Part shown: one piece after another, positions 4,716-34,047 of the stretch | How positions within the stretch are numbered: position 1 is the first letter of the stretch | Layout: every line of letters starts with the position of its first letter | NCBI GenBank assembly: GCA_904063045.1 | Contig: CAJFCJ010000002.1 | Coordinates: 310,001 to 374,000 of the forward strand | Direction of reading: 5' to 3' | DNA: 64,000 nt | Source of the DNA: Dimorphilus gyrociliatus | Taxonomy: Eukaryota; Animalia; Annelida | Notes under the pieces: generated by a model | Database searches by the model: none | The model's input: the letters and a program-made list of their open reading frames with translations, nothing else | Told to the model about the DNA's origin: nothing | Translations under genes and position numbers: made by a program

Positions 4716-5953
4716 CTACTTTTTTTTCGGGTACCAAAGAAGACTTTCGTCCGCTTGGCTCAAACTAGATATGCCGCAAAGTCCCATAGCGATATCTAAT
4801 TCCTTTTTCAAAATTTTTAACATTTCTCGAAGAGCGTCATCTCCCTTTAAGAGAAATAAATATTATTAGCTATATTGAATACTTATAATAAAACATTCGA
4901 AAAAATGATTCTTACAGCGCAAGCCAAGGCACTAAGAACGGGTCTGCCTAGGAAGACAACATCAGCACCGAGAGCAATAGCCTTTAAAATATCAGATCCT
5001 GTTCTGAAACCTCCATCGATGTATAACTCAACTCCTGTTCCTTTAACAACAGGAGCTATCTTCTTCAACAGATCAATAGTGGCTGGACAATCAGATAATT
5101 GTCTACCTCCATGATTAGATATCCAAATAGCGTCAACTCCTGCATTTATGGCCTCTTGGGCGTCGGAGGCTCTAGCAATTCCCTTAATGATCAATGGTAA
5201 TTTGGAGTTTGCTTTCCACCATTTAACTTGTTCCCATGTGTCACATCCATCGCCGAATACAGTTCTATCAACATTTTCATTCTTGATATAAGCTTGGAAT
5301 AAATCTTTCGGCAAATTAGGCAATCCAATCTTTTTCATGATTGCTGACTTGATGGGTCCACCAGCTTCAGATCTAAGACGGCCAGGAACAGCTCTGTCCA
5401 GGTTAAGAACGATTCCGTCCAAACCGGCTTTTTCCACTCTTTCCATAACTTCCAATTGATGTTCCTCTGTACCCAAAAATCCAGTGCAAATTAGCTTAAC
5501 ACCTTCATTTTCGGGGATTCCTTTTACCACTTCTTCCATTTTTGAGGCACTGAAGATCGTTAAACAGTTTGAAGCGCCTTCCTCACAGGCAAGTTCCATA
5601 CAACATTTTTCAGCTCCTCTGTAGAGCCATCCACGGGCTGGAGTTGGAGCAAATCCAATTGGGCATGACAAGGTTTTTCCTAACATTTTCTTTGATAAAT
5701 CTCTCTTAGTGATTCCAGCACAAGCTCTTGGCGCCAAGAGTATTCTAAGAATTAAGAACAGAAATATATTTAAATCGTATACTATAATGCTACCATAAGT
5801 TCGAACTTACTTCTTAAGGGAATCTATATTTCTCTGATGGCATTCTCCCTCGCCTGAACCACCGTACAGATAATCCTGAAACGTCTCGTCTTGGATTCCA
5901 CCTCTTGCTAGCCTTTCAAAGTCATCAATGCAGAAGATTGTTTCATCAGTCAT
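4716..5953 (-). CDS. HAO-like: FMN-dependent alpha-hydroxy acid oxidase (HAO/glycolate oxidase family), divergent; exons 5953-5811, 5744-4916, 4844-4716
   Basis: MTDETIFCIDDFE start, IKGI, SNHGGRQL, DGGFRTGSDILKAIALGA and FLGRP motifs; canonical splice sites give a complete ~365-aa protein. Confidence 0.9.
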
Positions 5954-7102
5954 TTTCTCTTTTGTTTAAGTTAAGAGACAACGGAAAATAGAAAAATGTA
6001 TAATCGCAACCGAATTTCAGAATGAAATGAACAGATAAAATATTATTTCACTATTTTATAGGGAACGTAGGAGAGTATTATAAAGAGGGATACTGGTTCA
6101 TTGTTCAGTACCGAGATGTTACAATGACGGCTGTCGAATTTATCGTCAAAATTAGAAGGAGGGGCTATTTAACTTTTCAATAGATCAATCTAGATAAAAT
6201 TTTGGGACAGATGTTTCATTTTTTGTTTCCAACTAAATGCCGGTCGCACTGCGGTATTTCTACAATACAAATGTATTCAATTGTAGGCTTTTCATCAGGA
6301 CTATTTTTGTGAACTAAGACAAGCTTATAATCCAGCTTAGTTATCACAGAGGAGAAATCTCGCTTCACTTGATATTTACGTTTGATGATATGTCTGTTCT
6401 ATAATAGTTAAAAGAATAGCTGATCACCAATCATTAGAAGAGGACCTGCTTTATCAAGCATTTGAAATATAGGTGGACGTGATTTCGCTTTCAACAAGAA
6501 TCAGAGATAATTTATGATTATTCACTAACCAATCATATATGCTCTCCGCTTAAAAGTACAAACGTAAGCGCCAATTCTCAATGATAAATCAAGGTTAATC
6601 ATAAAGTAATGATATCTGGTAGCTTTTAGCTTTTTTTATTTTAACTATATACAAATAGCATATGAAAATTTCATAGATATAAACTAACATTTTCTGACAA
6701 ACAACTTCCGTTTGTCACATATTCAGAACAATAAAACTGTTACGAAAAAAACTTTTAGCTGTCTATTTCAAAAGTATATCAAACATAAATTAAGGCAAAT
6801 TAAATTTGCTTACAAATTAAAAATAACTAATACTCTATCTAGATGACATCATACAATTATTGTATCCAACAGTTTAACAAATTAAGTATATGATTCTATA
6901 ATAGAAAAAACGGTAGCCTTGACCATTCTAGAGAAAACTAGAAAACAATTGTAAGATGCATCGAGTACATGTAAAATTAAAACCATAGTGGAGGTGAAAC
7001 AGTAAACCACTCCATAAAAATTTGGCAAATGGTCAACTTTTTTATGAATTGTTTTATAAAAAAAAAAAAACAATTTGAAAAATATATTTTTTAATTTTTT
7101 CT

Positions 7103-22250: not shown

Positions 22251-23457
22251 TTCACAGTATTCACTATGGATGACCTCTGTTAGTACCAAACAAAAGATGA
22301 ACTACCCAAAAAAAAGATACGACTTACTCGATAGCAAAACTTTAAATCTTAATAATAATATTGATAATAATGATAAATAATAATAACAATTGTTTATTTT
22401 TTTTTTACATTTATTCATTTGTTCTCATTAATTTTCAATTGTAGGAAAGAATAATAAATATATATATTTCAATTGAATATCTTTTAAAACAGAGTCGGTT
22501 TTAAAAGTAAAGGAAAGTTACTGTGTATTTATAGAAAATAGATCGTTTGATAGGGAATACGTATACAGTATATAGAGATACGGTATATAGAAAGAGAGAG
22601 AAAGAAGCTAAACAATAGAAGTAAGTGTACTTAACAATTAAATAGAATCATGTAGGCGGTATTTTAGAAAATTAAATAAATATTGTACGGAAAATATATA
22701 TTAACTATAGTTTGTCTTAAAAGTAAGACGGCTTACTAGGTGTAAACTTCGTAGCATGAATTTGCAATTTTTGTAAGAGAATGTAGCAGTGCTGTATATT
22801 GCAGTTGATTCAAGCACTTAAGAATACTTATATACACACATTATCGTTTTACAGCTACGGAATTAATCATTTTGTAAATACCCTATAGGGGAAATATATA
22901 AGATGATTTAGAAGAATGCCGTTTTTCGTTTTTGATGGAATATTCAGTCTACTTCAAAGGTCATAAAGCGAGTTCGTTAATCATTTTATCTTTCAAATCA
23001 ATCGAGCTGTTGCGTAGACTGTTCATTGTCTGATCATGTGTTTTTGTTTATGAAATTGATCTCTCACACAAATTGATTTATGCCGAGCTAACAATAAATA
23101 AGAAAAAAATTATGCAGAAGAGATGAGACGAAGGAGCTAGAAAGAACAATCGAATAAAAAATATAGCATTCCTACGCATTGGAGCGTTAGTCGTTCCGGC
23201 TATTTACTCAATCTCTATACAAATTGACCTCTTTGTTTGAGTAATAAAACCCTGCTTTTCCCATTTTACAACGTTCAGGCGTTACTAAAAATATATTTTG
23301 ATATATATTATGTGTAAGTAAATAATTCAAATATTATAGTGCACTAACCGCCATTTGTATTGTGGCGCCAATACGGATATTGCAGTCTATATTGCAGTTG
23401 ATTGTTGCGTCTCGTCTTATTCAACTAGAGGTCATCGGCTAGTTGGCTTTCATTTCA

Positions 23458-23787
23458 ATGCCGTCGCTCGTTAATTTTACCAGCTGCAATTCAACAGACA
23501 ACGATATAACAACAAAAGTTCCGTCTTGCCATACGATTCCTAAGAGCCGTAACGAGTTAGATGCTTTTCTATATATCGTAGTCGTTCTACTTTTCTATGC
23601 AGCCGTAATGTTACTCCTCATGATTAAATACATAAAGAGAGAAAAACAGGATGCCATATTGGAAAGATACTATGAAGATTTTGTTAAAAGAGACAGTTTT
23701 CGAAGAAATCTTCATACTATACCAGCACACGATCAAATAAGGATATCGAATGAAAGAAGACTGGAAGAAGAGCCTCGGAATGTTTAG
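23458..23787 (+). CDS. Single-pass type III membrane protein, KCNE/MinK-like, 109 aa, one coding exon
   Basis: ATG at 23458; no signal peptide; N-terminal sequons NFT and NST; TM DAFLYIVVVLLFYAAVMLLLMIKYIKREK. Confidence 0.7.
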   Translation: MPSLVNFTSCNSTDNDITTKVPSCHTIPKSRNELDAFLYIVVVLLFYAAVMLLLMIKYIKREKQDAILERYYEDFVKRDSFRRNLHTIPAHDQIRISNERRLEEEPRNV

Positions 23788-24136
23788 TATGTAAAATCAA
23801 ATATAATCATGGCTTTGCGAGGAATCGTGCGTAGTGTTGAATATAAAATGTACGATAAAAGTACAAGTATCATAATAGTACCTGTTGACTTTTAGAAAGA
23901 AAAAAAAAAGAAAAAAAAACATGCTGACAGATAGACGCCCACACTGTAACGGTCATTTTACTATCGAGACATTTTGCTATTCAAGTTTATTTCCATTCTT
24001 TTATTGAATTTATTGAATTCTTTTTTACAATTGGAATAAAGATTCTATTAAACATACATAATTAAACTGATATATGAATTTTTCGAATATTAGCTCTGTA
24101 TTAAAAATACTTATATTCTTATCCAAATAGTATCTT

Positions 24137-24363: not shown

Positions 24364-27300
24364 ATGAAAATGAACTGGAAGTTAAGGTTTTTAGTACTTT
24401 CTCTATTCGTCTCTTCTCTTACTTCTTGTCCTGTTAATTTCAATTGGAATTGCGAGTGTCGTGAAGATTTCTTTTATGGTACAAAAATCTATTGCAAAGA
24501 TATTGGGAAACAGTATAACGTATCTCCCTTTCAATCCTCGTCAAGCTCTTATCAACAACTGACTATACAAGGAAATTCTATTGTTGAAACGATCCAAAAA
24601 GATGCTTTTGCTAATGTAATCGTAAAATCATTAATACTGGATAAAATAAGAATACGCACAATAGAAGCAGGAGCTTTTAATAAGTTAGAAGCAGAGTTAA
24701 CTTGGTTGAATTTGAATGATAATAACATTGAGGATATAAGGAATGGTACATTTAACAAACTATCTTTTGTAGAGGTTTTAAGCATTAATAGTAATTTCTT
24801 ATCGGAAATTAAAAAGGATACATTTCGAGGAATGTTTAAATTATACGATTTAAACTTATATGGAAACCAAATACAGGAAATTAACGTCGAATCTTTTAGG
24901 ACACTTTCAAACTTAGAAACATTAGTTTTAAAAGCTAATAATTTGCGACATCTGCCGGATAAATTGTTTTCTCAAACAGCAAAGTTAAGAACACTCTATT
25001 TAGAGGAAAACTATTTAACTAAATTACCATCAGATTTATTCAAAAATTTAACAAAATTATCAAGATTACATTTATCTTCAAATTATCTTACGGCAATTGA
25101 TGATGAAATTTTCAATGATCTAAGCGATTTAGTTTATTTGAATCTAGCGAAGAATGATATAAATAAAATTCATAGTGAAGCATTTTCATCAACAAGGAAA
25201 TTAAGAGTTTTGAACTTAAGTAACAATCTAATTAAATTTCTGCCGAAAGGTCTATTTACGTCTTTATCTTCATTAAGAACCCTAAACCTTCATTATAATA
25301 AATTAAGGATATTGGAATCAAATACCTTTAATGGATTAAAGTTCCTATCAACATTATATTTATATTCAAATAGGCTTGTTAATATAACAAAAAACTCATT
25401 CTCTTCTTTGGATAATCTTCGAAATTTAAATCTGAATGATAATGAAATTAAAGAATTAAGCGTTGATCTATTCACCTTATGCCCCAAGCTATCTACATTA
25501 GAATTATCTAACAATTTTATAAACGATTTACCAAGTCAAATATTTAACAATTCAAAGGATTTATCAAAGGTTAAGCTCAGTGGGAATTTTTTAAGAAAAA
25601 TCAAATCCAGGACATTTTCAAATTTACCTTATTTAAATGATATTTACTTAGAAGACAATCGATTAGAGTTTCTCGATGTTCACAGCTTTGAAAACCTAGG
25701 AACTATTTACCTATTAGATCTGACGAACAATCTCTTAGAGGACATTCCTCGAAAAGCCTTTAACAAAATTAAGCGAATAGGTCAAGTTATTTTAAATAAA
25801 AATCGCTTTTTAATGGTTCCGGATGAGTTTGTAAAATCTTTTCAAGTATCCCAGTTATACATGGATGAGAATAGATTAAGAAAAATTGAAAGAAACACAT
25901 TTAAAAATGTAAACTTAATACATCTATCTCTAAAGCGTAATGAAATATCTCAACTGGAAGATGGTTGTTTCTCTTCGACAAACAAATTAAAGTATTTGTA
26001 TTTAAACTATAATAAAATAAAGACCTTTACAAATAAGATATTCGGAGAGAACTATAGGAATTTACGATTTTTTGATATCTCCTCCAATTTGCTTGAGAGA
26101 CTAGTTGATTCTATTATTTTGGACAATCTGTTTCTGTTAAATTTATCAAATAACAAGATTACTTTTATTGATAGGAATTATTTTAGAAATACCAGAAACA
26201 TTTATGAATTGAACCTGAGTCGGAACCGTCTAGAGAATCTTGACAGTAATCTATTGGCTAGTACATCAATTACGGTTCTGGATTTGAGCTTCAACGCCCT
26301 ACACAGTTCTAGTATATCAAATTTTAAAACGAATTCATTTGACGTCATACTAACTGGAAATGACTTAAAAAAATTTCCAACTTTGATATCAATGTTCAAG
26401 CTGAAAAGGTTACATTTGGAGAATACAATGTTAAATGTATTTAATGCAACTCTATTACCGGCGAGCGTTAACGATGTTTTCATAAATGACAACGAAATAA
26501 TTCAAGTTGATAATTGGGAAAAGATCTCATCTAGGATACAAAATTTCGCATTTGGAAAAAACGAAAAGGAGAGTAATTTTAATCATTTCGATATATGTCA
26601 AAATCAGAATAATCAATTAAATAGTTTAATAATTATCAATACGAAAAATGTGGATATATCTAAAATAACAAAATGCCAATCGTTAAAATACTTAAGTTTA
26701 TCTAATACTCTTGGAATAAGTGAAGAACAGCTTTACTTTCCTACCGACCTCATTAAATTAAGTTTAACTAGCAATAACTTAACGGATACTTTCTCTATTA
26801 ATAATTTAACAGAGCTTGAGGAATTAAATTTAGCCGATAACTTGATCGAAAATGTGGAAAAGCTACTAATTAAACTTTATAAAGTAAGAAAATTGAATCT
26901 AAGCCAGAATAATATTAAAAAAATTGGAAAAAATCTATTTAATGGACTTGGAATGTATCTGGAAGAGTTAACTCTTGATTCTAATAAAATAGTCAAAATA
27001 GAAGAGAGATCTTTTGAAAGACTACATAATTTAAGACTGTTATCGTTAAATAATAACAAACTATTGGATCTTAACTTTTTCCATAATCGAATTAATCTAC
27101 AACAAATCTTTCTGGAAAACAATAATATTGAAGTTTTCAATGCAAACATTCAAACTTTTAAGAAATTACAAAAATTATCCTTAAGAGGTAATCATATTAA
27201 GAATGTTGACGAAATAAAGGTTAATGGTATTGTGAGTGTCTTTTCAATAGACCTGTCGAAAAATAGACTTAAGCAACTTCCTAAAATAGACTCTCACAGA

Positions 27301-30300
27301 GCTGGCGAAATAGAGATAATTAATTTTAATGGAAATCTTATAAGTAATATTTCTAAAATAAGCAGTGATGCTCGTGTTAGAAATATTGACCTGTCTGACA
27401 ATCAGCTAACAGATCTACCTACATTTCAAACTAAAATTGATACAATAAATGTCAAAGGTAATCATATTGGTCTAATTAATTGCGGAAGTCTAGACTATAT
27501 TAAAAATGTCAATCTTGAGGAAAATTGTATTGAAACAATTAAAGATAATGGTAATAGTTCAATTTTCTTGGGAATATCTTTGAATTTACGTAATAATCTT
27601 TTATCGTTGGTACCAAGTTGTCTAGATAAGTACGATTCAATAGATATTCGAGGAAACCCTTTGGAATGTAATTGTCACTTATTGAACTATGAGAATTCGA
27701 CTTGCATTTATGAGGGAAAGTTTATACCAACAAATTGCCATACTTCAGTTTACTGCTCTCAACCGAAATTAATAGATAACTGTACAATTGAAAATACAGC
27801 AAAACTAAACGCAGAACGGTGTAAATTACAATCAGAAAGGACAACTCAGATGGAATATTTAAGTACTACTGGTTCTGCCTCCACTGCTTCAAAATCCACT
27901 GCTAAAATTGAAACATCAACCCAACAGAGAATAACAACAGAACCTACAATTATGGAAAGTAGTCATTCCACCATTAAAACTGTAACAACAGCTACTCCGA
28001 CAACAATGAAAGATTACAAAAGCACAACTCCTAATTTACTAAAATGGGAAAGTACTAAAGAAACGGAAGCTATTGAGAAACTTACCGATACTATAAAGTA
28101 TAAAACAACTGAAGGATTAACAAGCACACAAGATATAAAAACTTTATCAATCACCAAAGGAAAAATAACAACGGAAGGAAAACGTATATTGTCCTCAAGC
28201 CCAAGTTCCAGTACTCCTGAATTGACTAGTACCAAAGGAAAAATTGATGGAACTACTTCAGATGAATTTTCTGATAAAACTTTTACAGCAGAATCTTCAA
28301 GTTCCAATTATCCAACTTCTATGTCAGCAAAGTTCACCACCAACGAGGACAATTTAAAGACTTCTACCTTGGCCTTGACGTCACAAGAATCGACTTCAAT
28401 AGGCTCTACTGAAACATTATCACGGTGTCCGATCACGATTAATTCTTGTAAGTGCCAAGAGACACAATTAGAGCGCAATATAATATGCAAAGATATAGGT
28501 TTATATGAAAAAGTACCGACATTTTTGCCATCTAGCATCATTTACGATGAAATACGCTTTTTGGGCAATTCCAGCATTCGTACAATTCAAAGAGGTGCTT
28601 TTAGAAATATTAAGGTGAAATCTATATATCTACAACAAAATGAATGCGAAAACATTGAAGAAAAAGCGTTCGAGGGAGTCGGGAAATACTTATTAAACTT
28701 AACAATAACTATGAATGCCATTAAGAATATTAGAGCGGATGCCTTGAAGGATTTGAAAAAGCTGTATTATTTGGATCTCAGTAACAACTCCATTGATCAT
28801 ATTGAGAAGGAAGCTTTTAATCATGCTTTGAGCGTACGTAAAATAGATTTAAGTCATAACTCTATTAATTCAATAGAAGAGACACTGTTCAACAACTCAA
28901 CATTCTTGAATTCTATCGATTTATCTTACAATAATATTCAAAATGTTACCATGAGATTCAAAAAATTAATTCTTCTTACAACACTGAAATTATCCAACAA
29001 TCTACTTACCGACTTAAGAGACGAAATGATACCAACTTCCGTTAAGGATGTTGATCTGAGTGGAAATAAAATTACATCTATTAATTCAGCGGGTTTCTCT
29101 TCCTCCTTTTTTTTAAAGAAGTTGAACTTGAGCAGCAATGGACTGAAAATGATCTTACCGGGAGCATTTGACTATTTATCCTACTTAACATTACTGGATC
29201 TGTCAAACAATCGAATCGAAAACATTCCCTTGTCCGTCTTTAGTAGTTCTGGATTAGGCAAACTACAAACATTAATACTAAGGAACAATTCACTCGCGAA
29301 TTTAAAGAGCAATATGTTCAATGGCCTGAAGCGTTTGGAAAATTTGGCTCTAAGCTATAATGGAATTAAAAGGATAACAAGTCAAGCTTTCAATGGATTA
29401 GACAATTTGTTAACAATAGATTTGTCTCATAATTTATTAGAAATTGTAAGCAGCACATCTCTTAGATCAGTTAGTATATTGAAAGTTTTGGATTTATCTC
29501 ACAACCGACTTACAGATATTAATGGCATATCAAGAAATACTTATCTTGAAAGGATATTTCTAAGTTACAATAACATAACAAAATTGAATAGCCTGGCTTT
29601 TGATAGTATGATGTATTTAAAAGAAATAACTTTAGACCATAATCAATTACAAACTATCGTTGAAAAGACATTCTATTTACTTTTATTCTTGGAAAGAATT
29701 GATTTAAGCTCAAATCGAATAAGCACAATAGAGTATAGAGCTATCGATTTTTGCGATAAATTGATGTACGCTAATTTTTCTCACAATAAAATAAGCAGTT
29801 TAATCGATGAAAATGATAAATTTGTATTGGAATCATTGCAACGATCTTTGACCACTTTGGATTTATCTAACAACAAATTAGGAACAATTCCGGATTTTCG
29901 AAGGGATTTTACTAAGCTAACAGATCTGAAATTATTGAATAATCAGTGGATTTGCGACTGTAAACTAGGATGGATTAGATCAATTGTTGACAGAATAAAT
30001 CTCGACATGCCTCATTGCGAATTTCCTACTAAAAAGAGAAATTTTCTTTTAATTTGTTATGAAGCGATAGATGAAGAAAGCTGCTTAATAAAAACAAATC
30101 CAAGTACAATCTGTCTAGAAACAACTGTTAAAGCATATACCGAATTCGAAACCACAAGGATGACCACCCCTAAGATGGAAACTACAAAACTTGAAACTAC
30201 CATAACGGAAACAGCCAAAAAAGAAACTACCGAATTAGAAACCACAAGGATGACCACCCCTAAGATGGAAACTACAAAAATTGAAACTACCATAACGGAA

Positions 30301-33300
30301 GCAGCCAAAATAGAAACTACCAGTCTAGAAACCACCAGAGAGGAAACTACAAAAATGAAGACTGGCAATACGGTAATGACTACATTGGAAATCACCAATA
30401 GAGGCACTACCAAAATGAAAACAGGAAAAATGAAAACCACAGAAATACCATTAGCTACAACAGACTCTGTTTACACAGAATTTTTTACGAGTAAAGCATC
30501 TAAATTACATATCTCCTCGAATTCAATAGATCAAATTACAACTAACTTGACAACGTCTTCATTAGAACAGTCTCCTAAAAATACTTTAAATAATGATTCT
30601 TATACATTTTCAACTGAGTCAAGTTATGCAACAACACATGTTAAAGACAATAATAATTCATCAGAGAGTAAAGATACAATTATACCAACTAAATCAGCAA
30701 GTAGTTTTGTATCTTTTCCGCAAACTAGTCATGATACTAATATATCTTCAAAAAGTCCAAGGGAAATTACTTTCAAGCAAGGAGAGTCTGAAACATTCAA
30801 TTATAACGTTGAAATGTCTTCCTCATCTCCGGTAACAAAACCAACGAAATTCAAAGAGACATTAATGACTGAAAAACATACCACAGACAAAACAACCTAC
30901 CTACAAACTAATTCTATAGATCATCAGAGTTCTTCTTCCAGTTTAAAAACTGTAAAACAACAAGTTCAAACGACAGAGGAATTGACAACAACAAAAGCAA
31001 GCACTCAAACATCAGAGCCTCCGATCTGTAGAAAACGATTTGTTTGTCCACCTCAACATTTAAAGTGTTCATGTCCGTATGGATACCGATATAGAAAAAT
31101 TTTATGCGAATCACTGGGAGATATAACCATTCTGCCATATTTTTGCCAATCCGATACGTTCTATACAGAATTAAATATCTTTGGAGATACTTGTGTTAAG
31201 AAACTGGGCCAGGAATCGTTTAACAGTCTAATTCTAGAGCAGATACGGTTAGAAAATATTTGCATTGAGGAAATCGAAGATTTCGCATTCAAAGGATCTC
31301 ATTCCTTCCTCCAAGAGCTTCGTCTTAGGAATAATAAAATAAGATCGTGTACGAAAAATACTTTCGGTAAATTACACAATTTAAATTATTTAGATTTAAA
31401 TAATAACAGAATGGATAAATTGGATTCTGATTGTTTCAAGTATCTAGGAAATTTGGAAAAACTAAAATTAGGGTATAATTTTCTTCAAGATTTGCCCACT
31501 AATATATTTAAATGGAACAAGAACCTAAAAGAGATAGATCTATCCCATAACTTACTAACTACTATATCGGAGGGAACGTTTAATGGATCTTGTAGCCTCT
31601 CAACTTTAGATTTAAGCATGAATAATTTGGAAACTCTAAGTAGGATTTCTTTTACTGTTTTGGCCGATACTCTGGAAAGTCTTCAATTAGGTCGTAACAA
31701 TCTGAAAAGTCTACCAAAGGAGATATTCAATGGTCTTACAAAATTAAACTATCTAGATTTATCTGATAATTTTTTAAGTGAAATCGACGATTCTCATTTT
31801 AGTCAGATTATTAATTTAAATACTCTTAACATTCAATATAATCTACTGGAGGAGATCAGACCAGCTCAATTCGAATCTACCAACCAATTACAAATTCTCA
31901 ATTTGGAAAGAAATAAAATTTCAACCATTATTCCTAGGACCTTTATCAAATTAAACAAGTTAAGAACTTTAAACCTAAAAGGAAATATGATTGAACATTT
32001 GAGAACGGAAAGTTTTATAGGTCTAAAACGATTAAACACTTTAGACCTCTCTTTTAACAGACTTCGTTCGCTTCCATTAGACTTTTTTAGTGAACTTCAT
32101 AATTTGGAGTTATTAACGTTATCCAATAACAAATTAAAAGAGATATCTAACCTAACTATACCAGGAAACCTAAGTCAAATATGGCTTGAAGGAAATCTAT
32201 TTGATGATGTTCCAAGTCTATTTAAAGATCATAAAATACTGACACAAATTCATTTGGCAAAAAATAATATTAAAACAATACCATATAACGGATTTTCACG
32301 ACTGCCTTCACTCTATTCCTTAAATTTGGCGAACAATAAAATCGAGCAGATTGATTCATTATCTTTCAACTCTTTGAACTCATTAAGGATTCTTAATCTA
32401 TCAGATAATAATTTAGGTGAAGTACCCACCAAAGCAATAGAGAATCTGACATCTCTAACATCTCTCTTCCTCGAAAGAAATAATATTACATTTTTAAAAA
32501 ATGAAAGTTTTAAGACTTTAAAGAATTTAAAAGTACTACAACTAGGTGATAATCGCTTAGAGCTCATTCGAAAATCTTATTTTGTTGGATTAGACCAGCT
32601 AACTGTTTTAGATGTAAGTGATAATTTAATTGCAAGATTGGATGAGAAGATCTTTCATAATTTAAAAAATGTCATGTTCTTTAACGCCAGCGGAAACAAT
32701 TTGAAAAATATTACATTTAATGGGCAAGTGAAATTCTACAACATTTATACTATGGATCTATCTCGAAACAAGCTTCGAACAATTCCTTACAAATGTTTCA
32801 TTTCCTTAGTTTCTTTAAAGAAATTGTATCTGGATTTTAATGAATTGGAAAAATTGGACAAAGACGCTTTCCTAGGCTTAACTTACCTGGATAGTTTATC
32901 ATTGTCGTCAAATTATTTAAATCACGAGATGTTGAGTTCATTTCATCCCTTACGCAGCTTATCTAATCTTAATTTAAATAGAAATTCGTTAAAAGTATTA
33001 AATGACAATTCCCTACCTTTATCGTTAATCAGTCTACAAACTTTAACGATGAGATCGGCTGATTTACAATTGTTAAGCAACGAATCAATATCAAAATTAA
33101 AACTCCTACGTACGTTAGACTTAGGACAAAACAACTTAACAGATGATTCGATAAAAGCAATATCTTCTCTTGCATCACTTCGTAATCTACACCTGGACAA
33201 TAATCTATTCAGAAAAATCGAATTTAATATTGGGTTTCAACGACTTATGGTGTTAAATTTGTCGAATAATCATCTAGAATCAGATAAATTGGAAGCTATC

Positions 33301-34047
33301 TCTAAAATGAGACAGCTACAGTCTCTAACTTTAAGCTATAATGATCTAACGTACATTCCTCTAAATTCATTCGTACAGCTAATTACTCTACGCTACTTAT
33401 ATCTTCAGGGAAATGATCTATCATCAAACTTAGACGAGTCCTTAAAAAATCTTAAGGAATTGAAAAACCTTGAAGAGTTAAATATTGGCCATTGCTCTCT
33501 GGAACGATTTAATATATTCAATAGTTTTGCACGGTTGAAAAAAATCATACTGGAGAACAATCCAATTGGCGTCATTGAAGATTCCAGTATAAATAATAGT
33601 CATTTAGAGTACATTAATATGAGAAATATTAATTTGAGAAAAACTCCAAAAGCAATGGCGGATTTGGAGAAGTTAAGATTCTTAGATATTTCTTCTAATT
33701 TGCTAAACAGTACTATATATCTACCGAATAAATTATACGAACTAAAATATTTAAACATCAGTTCGAATCAAGCAGAGTTTGTGAAGTCCAAAAATTTTAA
33801 ATTGTCATCTTTTAATGTATTCGATGGTTCATTTAACAAATTTACATTCGAGAATGAAGTTATCCAGCTATTCTGTCCAAATACTTTAAAATGTGATGCT
33901 AACTTCAGAAATAACCGGATAAATACCACAAAAAATATACAAATACGAGGTAGATTCTCTCATCTGCAATTTCAGAATAATATGATAAAGAATATTTCAC
34001 GAATGTTATTGGCTAAAGTTACCTCTATTGACAATGTAGTTCTTTAA
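24364..34047 (+). CDS. Giant intronless leucine-rich repeat protein, 3227 aa: signal peptide, three LRRNT-capped LRR modules, two Ser/Thr-rich linkers
   Basis: 9.7-kb uninterrupted ORF with many LxxLxLxxNxL repeats. Caps are CPVNFNWNCEC, CPITINSCKC and CPPQHLKCSC; LRRCT motifs are GNPLECNC and NNQWICDC. Confidence 0.92.
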   Translation: MKMNWKLRFLVLSLFVSSLTSCPVNFNWNCECREDFFYGTKIYCKDIGKQYNVSPFQSSSSSYQQLTIQGNSIVETIQKDAFANVIVKSLILDKIRIRTIEAGAFNKLEAELTWLNLNDNNIEDIRNGTFNKLSFVEVLSINSNFLSEIKKDTFRGMFKLYDLNLYGNQIQEINVESFRTLSNLETLVLKANNLRHLPDKLFSQTAKLRTLYLEENYLTKLPSDLFKNLTKLSRLHLSSNYLTAIDDEIFNDLSDLVYLNLAKNDINKIHSEAFSSTRKLRVLNLSNNLIKFLPKGLFTSLSSLRTLNLHYNKLRILESNTFNGLKFLSTLYLYSNRLVNITKNSFSSLDNLRNLNLNDNEIKELSVDLFTLCPKLSTLELSNNFINDLPSQIFNNSKDLSKVKLSGNFLRKIKSRTFSNLPYLNDIYLEDNRLEFLDVHSFENLGTIYLLDLTNNLLEDIPRKAFNKIKRIGQVILNKNRFLMVPDEFVKSFQVSQLYMDENRLRKIERNTFKNVNLIHLSLKRNEISQLEDGCFSSTNKLKYLYLNYNKIKTFTNKIFGENYRNLRFFDISSNLLERLVDSIILDNLFLLNLSNNKITFIDRNYFRNTRNIYELNLSRNRLENLDSNLLASTSITVLDLSFNALHSSSISNFKTNSFDVILTGNDLKKFPTLISMFKLKRLHLENTMLNVFNATLLPASVNDVFINDNEIIQVDNWEKISSRIQNFAFGKNEKESNFNHFDICQNQNNQLNSLIIINTKNVDISKITKCQSLKYLSLSNTLGISEEQLYFPTDLIKLSLTSNNLTDTFSINNLTELEELNLADNLIENVEKLLIKLYKVRKLNLSQNNIKKIGKNLFNGLGMYLEELTLDSNKIVKIEERSFERLHNLRLLSLNNNKLLDLNFFHNRINLQQIFLENNNIEVFNANIQTFKKLQKLSLRGNHIKNVDEIKVNGIVSVFSIDLSKNRLKQLPKIDSHRAGEIEIINFNGNLISNISKISSDARVRNIDLSDNQLTDLPTFQTKIDTINVKGNHIGLINCGSLDYIKNVNLEENCIETIKDNGNSSIFLGISLNLRNNLLSLVPSCLDKYDSIDIRGNPLECNCHLLNYENSTCIYEGKFIPTNCHTSVYCSQPKLIDNCTIENTAKLNAERCKLQSERTTQMEYLSTTGSASTASKSTAKIETSTQQRITTEPTIMESSHSTIKTVTTATPTTMKDYKSTTPNLLKWESTKETEAIEKLTDTIKYKTTEGLTSTQDIKTLSITKGKITTEGKRILSSSPSSSTPELTSTKGKIDGTTSDEFSDKTFTAESSSSNYPTSMSAKFTTNEDNLKTSTLALTSQESTSIGSTETLSRCPITINSCKCQETQLERNIICKDIGLYEKVPTFLPSSIIYDEIRFLGNSSIRTIQRGAFRNIKVKSIYLQQNECENIEEKAFEGVGKYLLNLTITMNAIKNIRADALKDLKKLYYLDLSNNSIDHIEKEAFNHALSVRKIDLSHNSINSIEETLFNNSTFLNSIDLSYNNIQNVTMRFKKLILLTTLKLSNNLLTDLRDEMIPTSVKDVDLSGNKITSINSAGFSSSFFLKKLNLSSNGLKMILPGAFDYLSYLTLLDLSNNRIENIPLSVFSSSGLGKLQTLILRNNSLANLKSNMFNGLKRLENLALSYNGIKRITSQAFNGLDNLLTIDLSHNLLEIVSSTSLRSVSILKVLDLSHNRLTDINGISRNTYLERIFLSYNNITKLNSLAFDSMMYLKEITLDHNQLQTIVEKTFYLLLFLERIDLSSNRISTIEYRAIDFCDKLMYANFSHNKISSLIDENDKFVLESLQRSLTTLDLSNNKLGTIPDFRRDFTKLTDLKLLNNQWICDCKLGWIRSIVDRINLDMPHCEFPTKKRNFLLICYEAIDEESCLIKTNPSTICLETTVKAYTEFETTRMTTPKMETTKLETTITETAKKETTELETTRMTTPKMETTKIETTITEAAKIETTSLETTREETTKMKTGNTVMTTLEITNRGTTKMKTGKMKTTEIPLATTDSVYTEFFTSKASKLHISSNSIDQITTNLTTSSLEQSPKNTLNNDSYTFSTESSYATTHVKDNNNSSESKDTIIPTKSASSFVSFPQTSHDTNISSKSPREITFKQGESETFNYNVEMSSSSPVTKPTKFKETLMTEKHTTDKTTYLQTNSIDHQSSSSSLKTVKQQVQTTEELTTTKASTQTSEPPICRKRFVCPPQHLKCSCPYGYRYRKILCESLGDITILPYFCQSDTFYTELNIFGDTCVKKLGQESFNSLILEQIRLENICIEEIEDFAFKGSHSFLQELRLRNNKIRSCTKNTFGKLHNLNYLDLNNNRMDKLDSDCFKYLGNLEKLKLGYNFLQDLPTNIFKWNKNLKEIDLSHNLLTTISEGTFNGSCSLSTLDLSMNNLETLSRISFTVLADTLESLQLGRNNLKSLPKEIFNGLTKLNYLDLSDNFLSEIDDSHFSQIINLNTLNIQYNLLEEIRPAQFESTNQLQILNLERNKISTIIPRTFIKLNKLRTLNLKGNMIEHLRTESFIGLKRLNTLDLSFNRLRSLPLDFFSELHNLELLTLSNNKLKEISNLTIPGNLSQIWLEGNLFDDVPSLFKDHKILTQIHLAKNNIKTIPYNGFSRLPSLYSLNLANNKIEQIDSLSFNSLNSLRILNLSDNNLGEVPTKAIENLTSLTSLFLERNNITFLKNESFKTLKNLKVLQLGDNRLELIRKSYFVGLDQLTVLDVSDNLIARLDEKIFHNLKNVMFFNASGNNLKNITFNGQVKFYNIYTMDLSRNKLRTIPYKCFISLVSLKKLYLDFNELEKLDKDAFLGLTYLDSLSLSSNYLNHEMLSSFHPLRSLSNLNLNRNSLKVLNDNSLPLSLISLQTLTMRSADLQLLSNESISKLKLLRTLDLGQNNLTDDSIKAISSLASLRNLHLDNNLFRKIEFNIGFQRLMVLNLSNNHLESDKLEAISKMRQLQSLTLSYNDLTYIPLNSFVQLITLRYLYLQGNDLSSNLDESLKNLKELKNLEELNIGHCSLERFNIFNSFARLKKIILENNPIGVIEDSSINNSHLEYINMRNINLRKTPKAMADLEKLRFLDISSNLLNSTIYLPNKLYELKYLNISSNQAEFVKSKNFKLSSFNVFDGSFNKFTFENEVIQLFCPNTLKCDANFRNNRINTTKNIQIRGRFSHLQFQNNMIKNISRMLLAKVTSIDNVVL
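30148..30327 (+). repeat. Coding tandem duplication, 2 x 90 bp (ETTRMTTPKMETTK...), in the second LRR linker
   Basis: Copies start at 30148 and 30238. Confidence 0.85.

Follow-up and report, generated by a model that had tools for sequence, protein, structure and literature searches.

The gene at 23458-23787 and its surroundings

The window analysed in this study (64,000 nucleotides of a Dimorphilus gyrociliatus contig) carries at 23458-23787, on the forward strand, a short open reading frame that is almost certainly a real gene. The frame opens at a first ATG at 23458, closes at a TAG at 23785-23787 and reads through 109 codons with no need of an intron, in agreement with the initial annotation of a 109-aa protein in one coding exon. 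The features of the gene and its flanks are as follows.

23201..23267 (+): conserved upstream non-coding block, 91% identical to L011:1-67 of a related species
23343..23457 (+): conserved 5′ flank, belonging to a longer block (window 23343-23806, L011:213-675) of 80% identity
23458..23787 (+): entire coding sequence in a single exon, 109 codons and the TAG
23458..23562 (+): N-terminus, residues 1-35, predicted extracellular, read from the sequence
23563..23631 (+): transmembrane helix, residues 36-58 (A-F-L-Y-I-V-V-V-L-L-F-Y-A...K-Y), from HMMER, Pfam and AlphaFold2 (pLDDT 92-99)
23632..23712 (+): predicted cytoplasmic juxtamembrane helix, residues 59-85 (I-K-R-E-K, then ...L-E-R-Y-Y-E-D-F-V-K-R-D-S-F)
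23713..23784 (+): predicted cytoplasmic tail, residues 86-109, variable, ending in P-R-N-V (dN 0.54 / dS 0.77; pLDDT 57-63)
24035..24040 (+): AATAAA, candidate polyadenylation signal, about 250 nt past the stop codon and upstream of the next gene (24364)

The polar N-terminus of the protein leaves no signal-like segment and contains two sequons, N6-F-T (23473-23481) and N11-S-T (23488-23496), together with two cysteines (Cys10 and Cys24). The sole hydrophobic stretch is A36-I56, bounded by D35 and K57, and the basic residues K57, K60, R61 and K63 follow within K57-Y-I-K-R-E-K. The architecture first described for this protein (no signal peptide, two N-terminal sequons, one transmembrane segment and a basic juxtamembrane segment) is thus what we also read, and AlphaFold2 likewise returns a single helix. 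Run with the family alignment, it predicts that this helix extends unbroken from residue 29 to residue 85; pLDDT is >90 at about 31-75 and confidence is low at both ends. A Foldseek search of the model against the PDB gave no useful match, as expected for a single helix. Sequence and model together suggest type III topology, with the N-terminus outside, and N-glycosylation. The tail (residues 86-109) is probably disordered, and its PRNV ending has no Ser/Thr at position -2 and is not a canonical PDZ ligand.

A Logan assembly of a related species contains an orthologue of 108 aa (P0151, L011:329-655), which, like the window protein, begins with MPSLVN and ends with PRNV. It sits directly upstream of the same giant leucine-rich repeat (LRR) gene, so that synteny is conserved. 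Between the two species dN is 0.174 and dS 0.785 over the whole gene, and 0.26 and 0.97 over the N-terminus (residues 1-31). Across the core (residues 32-85), where the proteins are near-identical throughout, the values are 0.024 and 0.69 (dN/dS ~0.035). The tail evolves fast, at the rates listed above, with its last four residues unchanged. The orthologue keeps the second sequon and both cysteines; the first sequon is gone there (NFT to NET). The gene is under purifying selection.

These comparisons bear on the alternative that the frame is a chance ORF or a pseudogene rather than a functional gene. The near-identity of the orthologue in the core, together with 209 relatives in several phyla (described below), places the frame far beyond chance, and the low core dN/dS in conserved synteny and the intactness of the frame within AT-rich DNA point the same way. 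The alternative can draw on the sequencing runs, of which a single one, of unspecified kind, contains the locus and none of the RNA runs does; for this reason transcription of the gene is inferred. We regard a chance ORF or pseudogene as effectively refuted, its remaining probability being minute.

The conserved 5′ flank (23343-23457) is probably a 5′ UTR or core promoter, and the block further upstream (23201-23267) may be a promoter or else a non-coding 5′ exon, both judged from sequence conservation. At ~23380-23405 lie two TTGCAG motifs, which might act as splice acceptors if the gene has a non-coding 5′ exon, as vertebrate KCNE genes do. Downstream, the LRR ORF (24364-34047, +) is intronless, encodes 3227 aa of leucine-rich repeat modules and begins 577 nt past the small gene; its counterpart in the related species encodes 3182 aa and follows immediately after the orthologue. 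The pairing of the two genes may be only synteny.

An unnamed family across invertebrate phyla

A word-indexed search with the window protein returned no relatives, and an exhaustive search was therefore required. Exhaustive phmmer against 1.84 billion representative proteins returned 209 relatives at E<=1e-3, with 43 of these at E<=1e-10. Every named member is labelled "hypothetical" or "uncharacterized". They come from annelids (Ridgeia, Paralvinella), molluscs (Patella, Pinctada, Babylonia, Plakobranchus), chelicerates (Tachypleus, Ixodes, Dermacentor and several spiders), crustaceans (Eurytemora, Halocaridina, Penaeus) and amphioxus (Branchiostoma lanceolatum, B. belcheri), and no vertebrate was among the named relatives in the searches run. 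The spiralian scope originally proposed was too narrow, since chelicerates, crustaceans and amphioxus also have the family.

We aligned 79 family sequences (alignment A1) and a crustacean subgroup (A2, n=37). The core of A1 reads D-A-x-x-Y-I-V-V-V-L-x-F-Y-A-x-S-x-V-x-L-M-V-K-Y-I-R-R-E-x-E-E-A-x-L-x-x-Y-Y-x-E-F-V-K-R-x-x-F. Four positions are invariant across the 79 sequences (A36, Y39, V43 and E62) and five more are nearly so (I40, Y47, L54, Y58 and R78). Past the helix the family is marked by a conserved EFVKR(D/E)xF motif. Among family proteins that start with Met, 183 of 196 carry one or more sequons ahead of the helix and a signal-like N-terminus occurs in 1 of 196, while a class I PDZ ligand (such as ETSV, ETAV or ETPV) stands at the C-terminus of 95 of the 197 relatives with the core motif. 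As in the window, the coding sequence occupies a single exon in Patella (423 bp, 140 aa) and Tachypleus (384 bp, 127 aa); the amphioxus family gene has an intron that splits the membrane helix. In the tree, the window gene groups with its sister-species orthologue inside a cluster rich in molluscs and annelids, with weak resolution.

Two kinds of variant form were seen among the relatives. In Branchiostoma lanceolatum, the gene for P0059 (L022:5751-6478) carries four degenerate tandem copies upstream of the second exon that is used (5751-5840, 5891-5938, 6041-6088 and 6144-6242), 42-91% identical at the protein level, which may be alternative exons or relics of duplication. Three long mollusc forms of 647-871 aa (P0037, P0048 and P0075) join a KCNE-like N-terminal module to a tail of 500-700 aa that still terminates in K-E-T-K-V.

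The subfamily has a single member in the Dimorphilus genome, the window gene (109.5 bits with the family profile). The same profile finds seven other single-pass genes at 21-41 bits (E 7e-9 to 0.014), located in genome G000 at C2:729k, C20:1417k, C11:167k, C9:487k, C14:984k, C2:1065k and C2:1067k (loci L014-L020). These paralogues resemble the window gene in overall architecture and in their helix motif (G-A-L-Y-Y-V-V-V...I-A-S-H-I-[RK], related to that of the window gene), and differ in forming a separate subfamily on a long branch with 99% support in the tree. Several are multi-exon, and in three the first exon stops at a GTAAG donor directly after the juxtamembrane helix. The contig 14 paralogue (L002:1969 onward, G000 C14:~985k) reads for 139 codons and then enters a stretch of N.

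The paralogues raise the question of whether the window protein is a branch of a protostome MPS-like superfamily that includes them and stands apart from vertebrate KCNE. C. elegans MPS-1 to MPS-4 are comparable in being single-pass proteins from an invertebrate that have been called KCNE-like helpers for voltage-gated potassium channels (Kv channels); they differ in scope, given that the family described here spans annelids, molluscs, arthropods and amphioxus. Besides the detection of the seven genes by the family profile, the case for this placement is a weak match of the window protein to the Pfam family MPS-4 (PF17523; 14.1 bits, E 0.053). That score is far under the cut-off of 25 bits, MPS-4 is absent from the 25 families most often matched by the 79 members, and the paralogues split off on their well-supported long branch. 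We therefore consider an MPS affiliation very improbable; it would in any case be compatible with a KCNE relationship if MPS and KCNE are themselves related.

Relationship to the KCNE family

The initial annotation took the window protein for an unrecognised member of the KCNE family and noted that this family is usually treated as vertebrate. The literature still takes this position: invertebrates are said to have no identified kcne gene, and the family is held to have arisen in early vertebrates (PMC11659587, 2024; PMC13516689, 2026). For Ciona, too, the literature knows no KCNE (PMC3206303), and MPS proteins are regarded as nematode-specific (PMC13516689), with only nematode MPS being called KCNE-like. 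In the searchable literature on KCNE-like proteins and KCNE homologues, we found no report of an invertebrate family such as this one.

The top Pfam match of the window protein is the KCNE family, ISK_Channel (PF02060), with 17.7 bits and E 0.0031, profile positions 37-74 aligning with residues 29-67. The profile comparison thus favours KCNE as the best match but stays under the gathering cut-off of 22.1 bits, and for that reason its own score does not suffice to class the protein as a canonical KCNE. A sequence search of the PDB with the window protein gave three matches only, all of them KCNE1. HMMER pairs residues 28-69 with human KCNE1 35-76. The alignment to KCNE had been described as free of gaps; it is nearly so in HMMER, although one gap falls before the conserved Tyr. 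FTL of KCNE1 aligns with V50-M51-L52, which bears out the earlier remark that this gating triplet is replaced. An echo of KCNE1 VYIE had been seen in YYED, but HMMER pairs VYIE with D74-F-V-K instead. In a search by ESM features, KCNE clusters came out nearest (0.92, with 201 of 256 features in common). This Atlas search also returned, at second rank, a weak likeness to clusters of small membrane proteins, SRTM1 among them. Three further Pfam matches of the window protein (DC_STAMP, Viral_Beta_CD and DUF7952) recurred in 1, 3 and 6 of the 79 relatives and were set aside as chance. When the genome was scanned in six frames with PF02060, the window locus was missed and only one chance-level match appeared elsewhere (E 0.83).

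For the window protein alone the evidence for KCNE is weak, given its 17.7 bits; it is consistent at the level of the family. ISK_Channel is matched at E<=0.1 by 71 of the 79 members and the next family by 14. At E<=1.5e-4, which we took as roughly the Pfam gathering score of ISK_Channel, 19 of the 79 match it and no other Pfam family is reached; in the crustacean subgroup 23 of 37 do so. CrgA, matched by 14 members and never at cut-off level, was rejected. Four relatives that we checked are above the ISK_Channel cut-off (P0082, 28.4 bits; P0155, 26.6; P0119, 25.5; P0068, 24.2), and their matches span profile positions ~19-89, well past the helix. Three of them are reached by phmmer directly from the window protein (P0082 at E 4e-9, P0068 at 9e-10, P0119 at 1e-6), and P0155 came from the family-profile search. 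A query with residues 44-103 of P0068, the relative most similar to KCNE3, found at E<=10 nothing beyond the crustacean subgroup to which P0068 belongs. A PF02060 hit has already been assigned automatically to a few relatives in the protein collection, so the link to KCNE is latent in the databases but unnamed.

Profile searches of the PDB agree with Pfam. With the A1 profile against 177,635 PDB sequences, the best nine matches are KCNE3, KCNE1 and KCNE2 (E 0.018-0.6, bias 0.0), the profile pairing with KCNE3 40-91 and KCNE1 24-98. Beyond the helix, the alignment to KCNE1 sets Y72 against F78, F75 against Y81, V76 against I82, D79 against D85 and F81 against W87, and the juxtamembrane stretch (residues 59-85) is paired with KCNE1 'DPFNVYIESDAW'. 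The A2 crustacean profile finds KCNE3 at E 0.003, in an alignment that also takes in the N-terminal helix and the glycosylation site on it.

The family and vertebrate KCNE1-6/KCNE0 (MinK, MiRPs) are alike in several respects. The window protein is small and predicted to be a type III, single-pass protein whose N-terminus has sequons and lacks a signal peptide. A single exon contains all of the coding sequence in the window gene, Patella and Tachypleus, though not in amphioxus. The helix and its boundaries follow A-x-L-Y-[IV]...V...F-[YF]...Y-I-[RK], and past the helix HMMER aligns an aromatic, aliphatic and acidic pattern with KCNE1 F78...Y81-I82...D85...W87. The family differs from KCNE in the gating triplet (V-M-L in the window protein and S-x-V in the family consensus, against FTL in KCNE1), in the invariant Glu (E62) with an acidic run after the basic cluster, and in its distribution in protostomes and amphioxus. 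The EFVKR(D/E)xF motif and, in about half of the members, the C-terminal PDZ ligand are also its own.

This mixture of likeness and difference could arise if the family were independent and had converged on KCNE-like helix and juxtamembrane features, with a job unrelated to Kv channels, for example that of a PDZ-scaffolded adaptor or of a protein assisting some other receptor, channel or transporter. E62, EFVKR(D/E)xF and the PDZ ligand of 95 of the 197 members, all without a KCNE counterpart, would fit such an origin, as would the marginal KCNE scores and the weak SRTM1 likeness. Short membrane helices can converge, and the PDB E-values for KCNE are only 0.003-0.02. The amphioxus members, expected to be the closest to vertebrates, have no ISK_Channel match at E<=0.01 and carry the in-helix intron. 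Against convergence, ISK_Channel is the only family reached near its cut-off, and the HMMER matches run past the helix on both sides with a bias of 0.0. Three different methods (Pfam, PDB sequence search and ESM features) also agree on KCNE. The paralogues provide a natural negative control: five of them, of like architecture and from the same genome, give no ISK_Channel match even at E<=10. On balance we consider convergence rather unlikely, though it deserves serious weight.

Homology between the window protein and KCNE is, in our judgement from these alignments, likely. The results support KCNE as the best and only consistent known relative of the protein and its family. The initial annotation had named the lack of a KCNE profile hit, with a better match to another single-pass family, as grounds for abandoning the proposal; in the Pfam search the best hit is KCNE. 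Its assignment to the KCNE family itself stands only in part: KCNE is the one consistent relative, but the protein's own score is below the cut-off. The protein is read as belonging to an unnamed invertebrate sister family that is KCNE-like at the sequence level, and not as a canonical KCNE. What would be new here is a KCNE-related invertebrate family without a name, KCNE in vertebrates and MPS in nematodes being already known.

A possible role at Kv channels

Taken as a whole, the reading that we favour, with reasonable but by no means full confidence, is that the window gene encodes a small type III glycoprotein of an unnamed family distributed across the Bilateria, a remote sister family of KCNE, which by analogy would help Kv channels. 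For the functional part of this reading, that the protein acts as a Kv-channel accessory subunit, analogy with KCNE puts the chances slightly above even. A more specific version is tentative, and we place it a little below even chances: the family would be the ancient bilaterian counterpart of KCNE, tuning KCNQ or other Kv channels in invertebrate nerve, muscle or epithelia and having, in many members, a PDZ tail that vertebrate KCNEs would have lost.

The KCNE helix interfaces with KCNQ1 in the cleft between voltage sensor and pore, and a triplet within it (FTL in KCNE1, TVG in KCNE3) sets the gating outcome. Structures of the KCNE3-KCNQ1 and KCNE1-KCNQ1 complexes are available in the PDB (6V01, 9U7F). 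By analogy, the helix of the window protein (residues 36-58) would lodge in the lipid-facing cleft between voltage sensor and pore of a Kv tetramer. K57 and the I-K-R-E-K cluster (K60, R61 and K63), with the conserved amphipathic helix that runs up to residue 85, would be placed along the inner leaflet, next to the gate and lipid-binding region of the channel, and helix and basic cluster together would alter channel gating, surface expression or both. In the many relatives with an ETxV tail, PDZ scaffold proteins would anchor the complex; the Dimorphilus protein has PRNV in that place. The triplet position is V50-M51-L52 in the window protein and S-x-V in the family consensus, so that it cannot be predicted which way any modulation would go. 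This mechanism is proposed by analogy throughout.

Five invertebrate groups have a conserved family under purifying selection for which KCNE is the sole known relative by profile, and if the relationship is true, KCNE-type channel regulation would date back to the bilaterian ancestor and would not be a vertebrate invention. Such genes have been overlooked because their products are short (~110-170 aa), mostly labelled "uncharacterized" and, for the most part, just under the Pfam cut-off. The family offers concrete genes for co-expression with invertebrate KCNQ and other Kv channels, and these could be taken, among other sources, from Dimorphilus, from a mollusc such as oyster or limpet, from shrimp or horseshoe crab, or from amphioxus.

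There are two KCNQ genes in the Dimorphilus genome, one of them with a very KCNQ1-like S1-S6 exon, and KCNQ is a candidate partner of the window protein by analogy; other Kv types are possible as well. A complex prediction with four copies of the KCNQ1-like S1-S6 region (L024:5603-6286, minus strand) and residues 25-90 of the window protein, in which alignments were unused, scored 0.00 and speaks neither way. The KCNQ1-like gene itself (L024:5189-6439, minus strand, on C1 of G000) has an open frame of 416 aa that encodes nearly all of S1-S6 together with the first part of the C-terminus, and the acceptor of this exon, TTTAG|G, lies just before F-M-M-V-L-V-C-L-I-F of S1.
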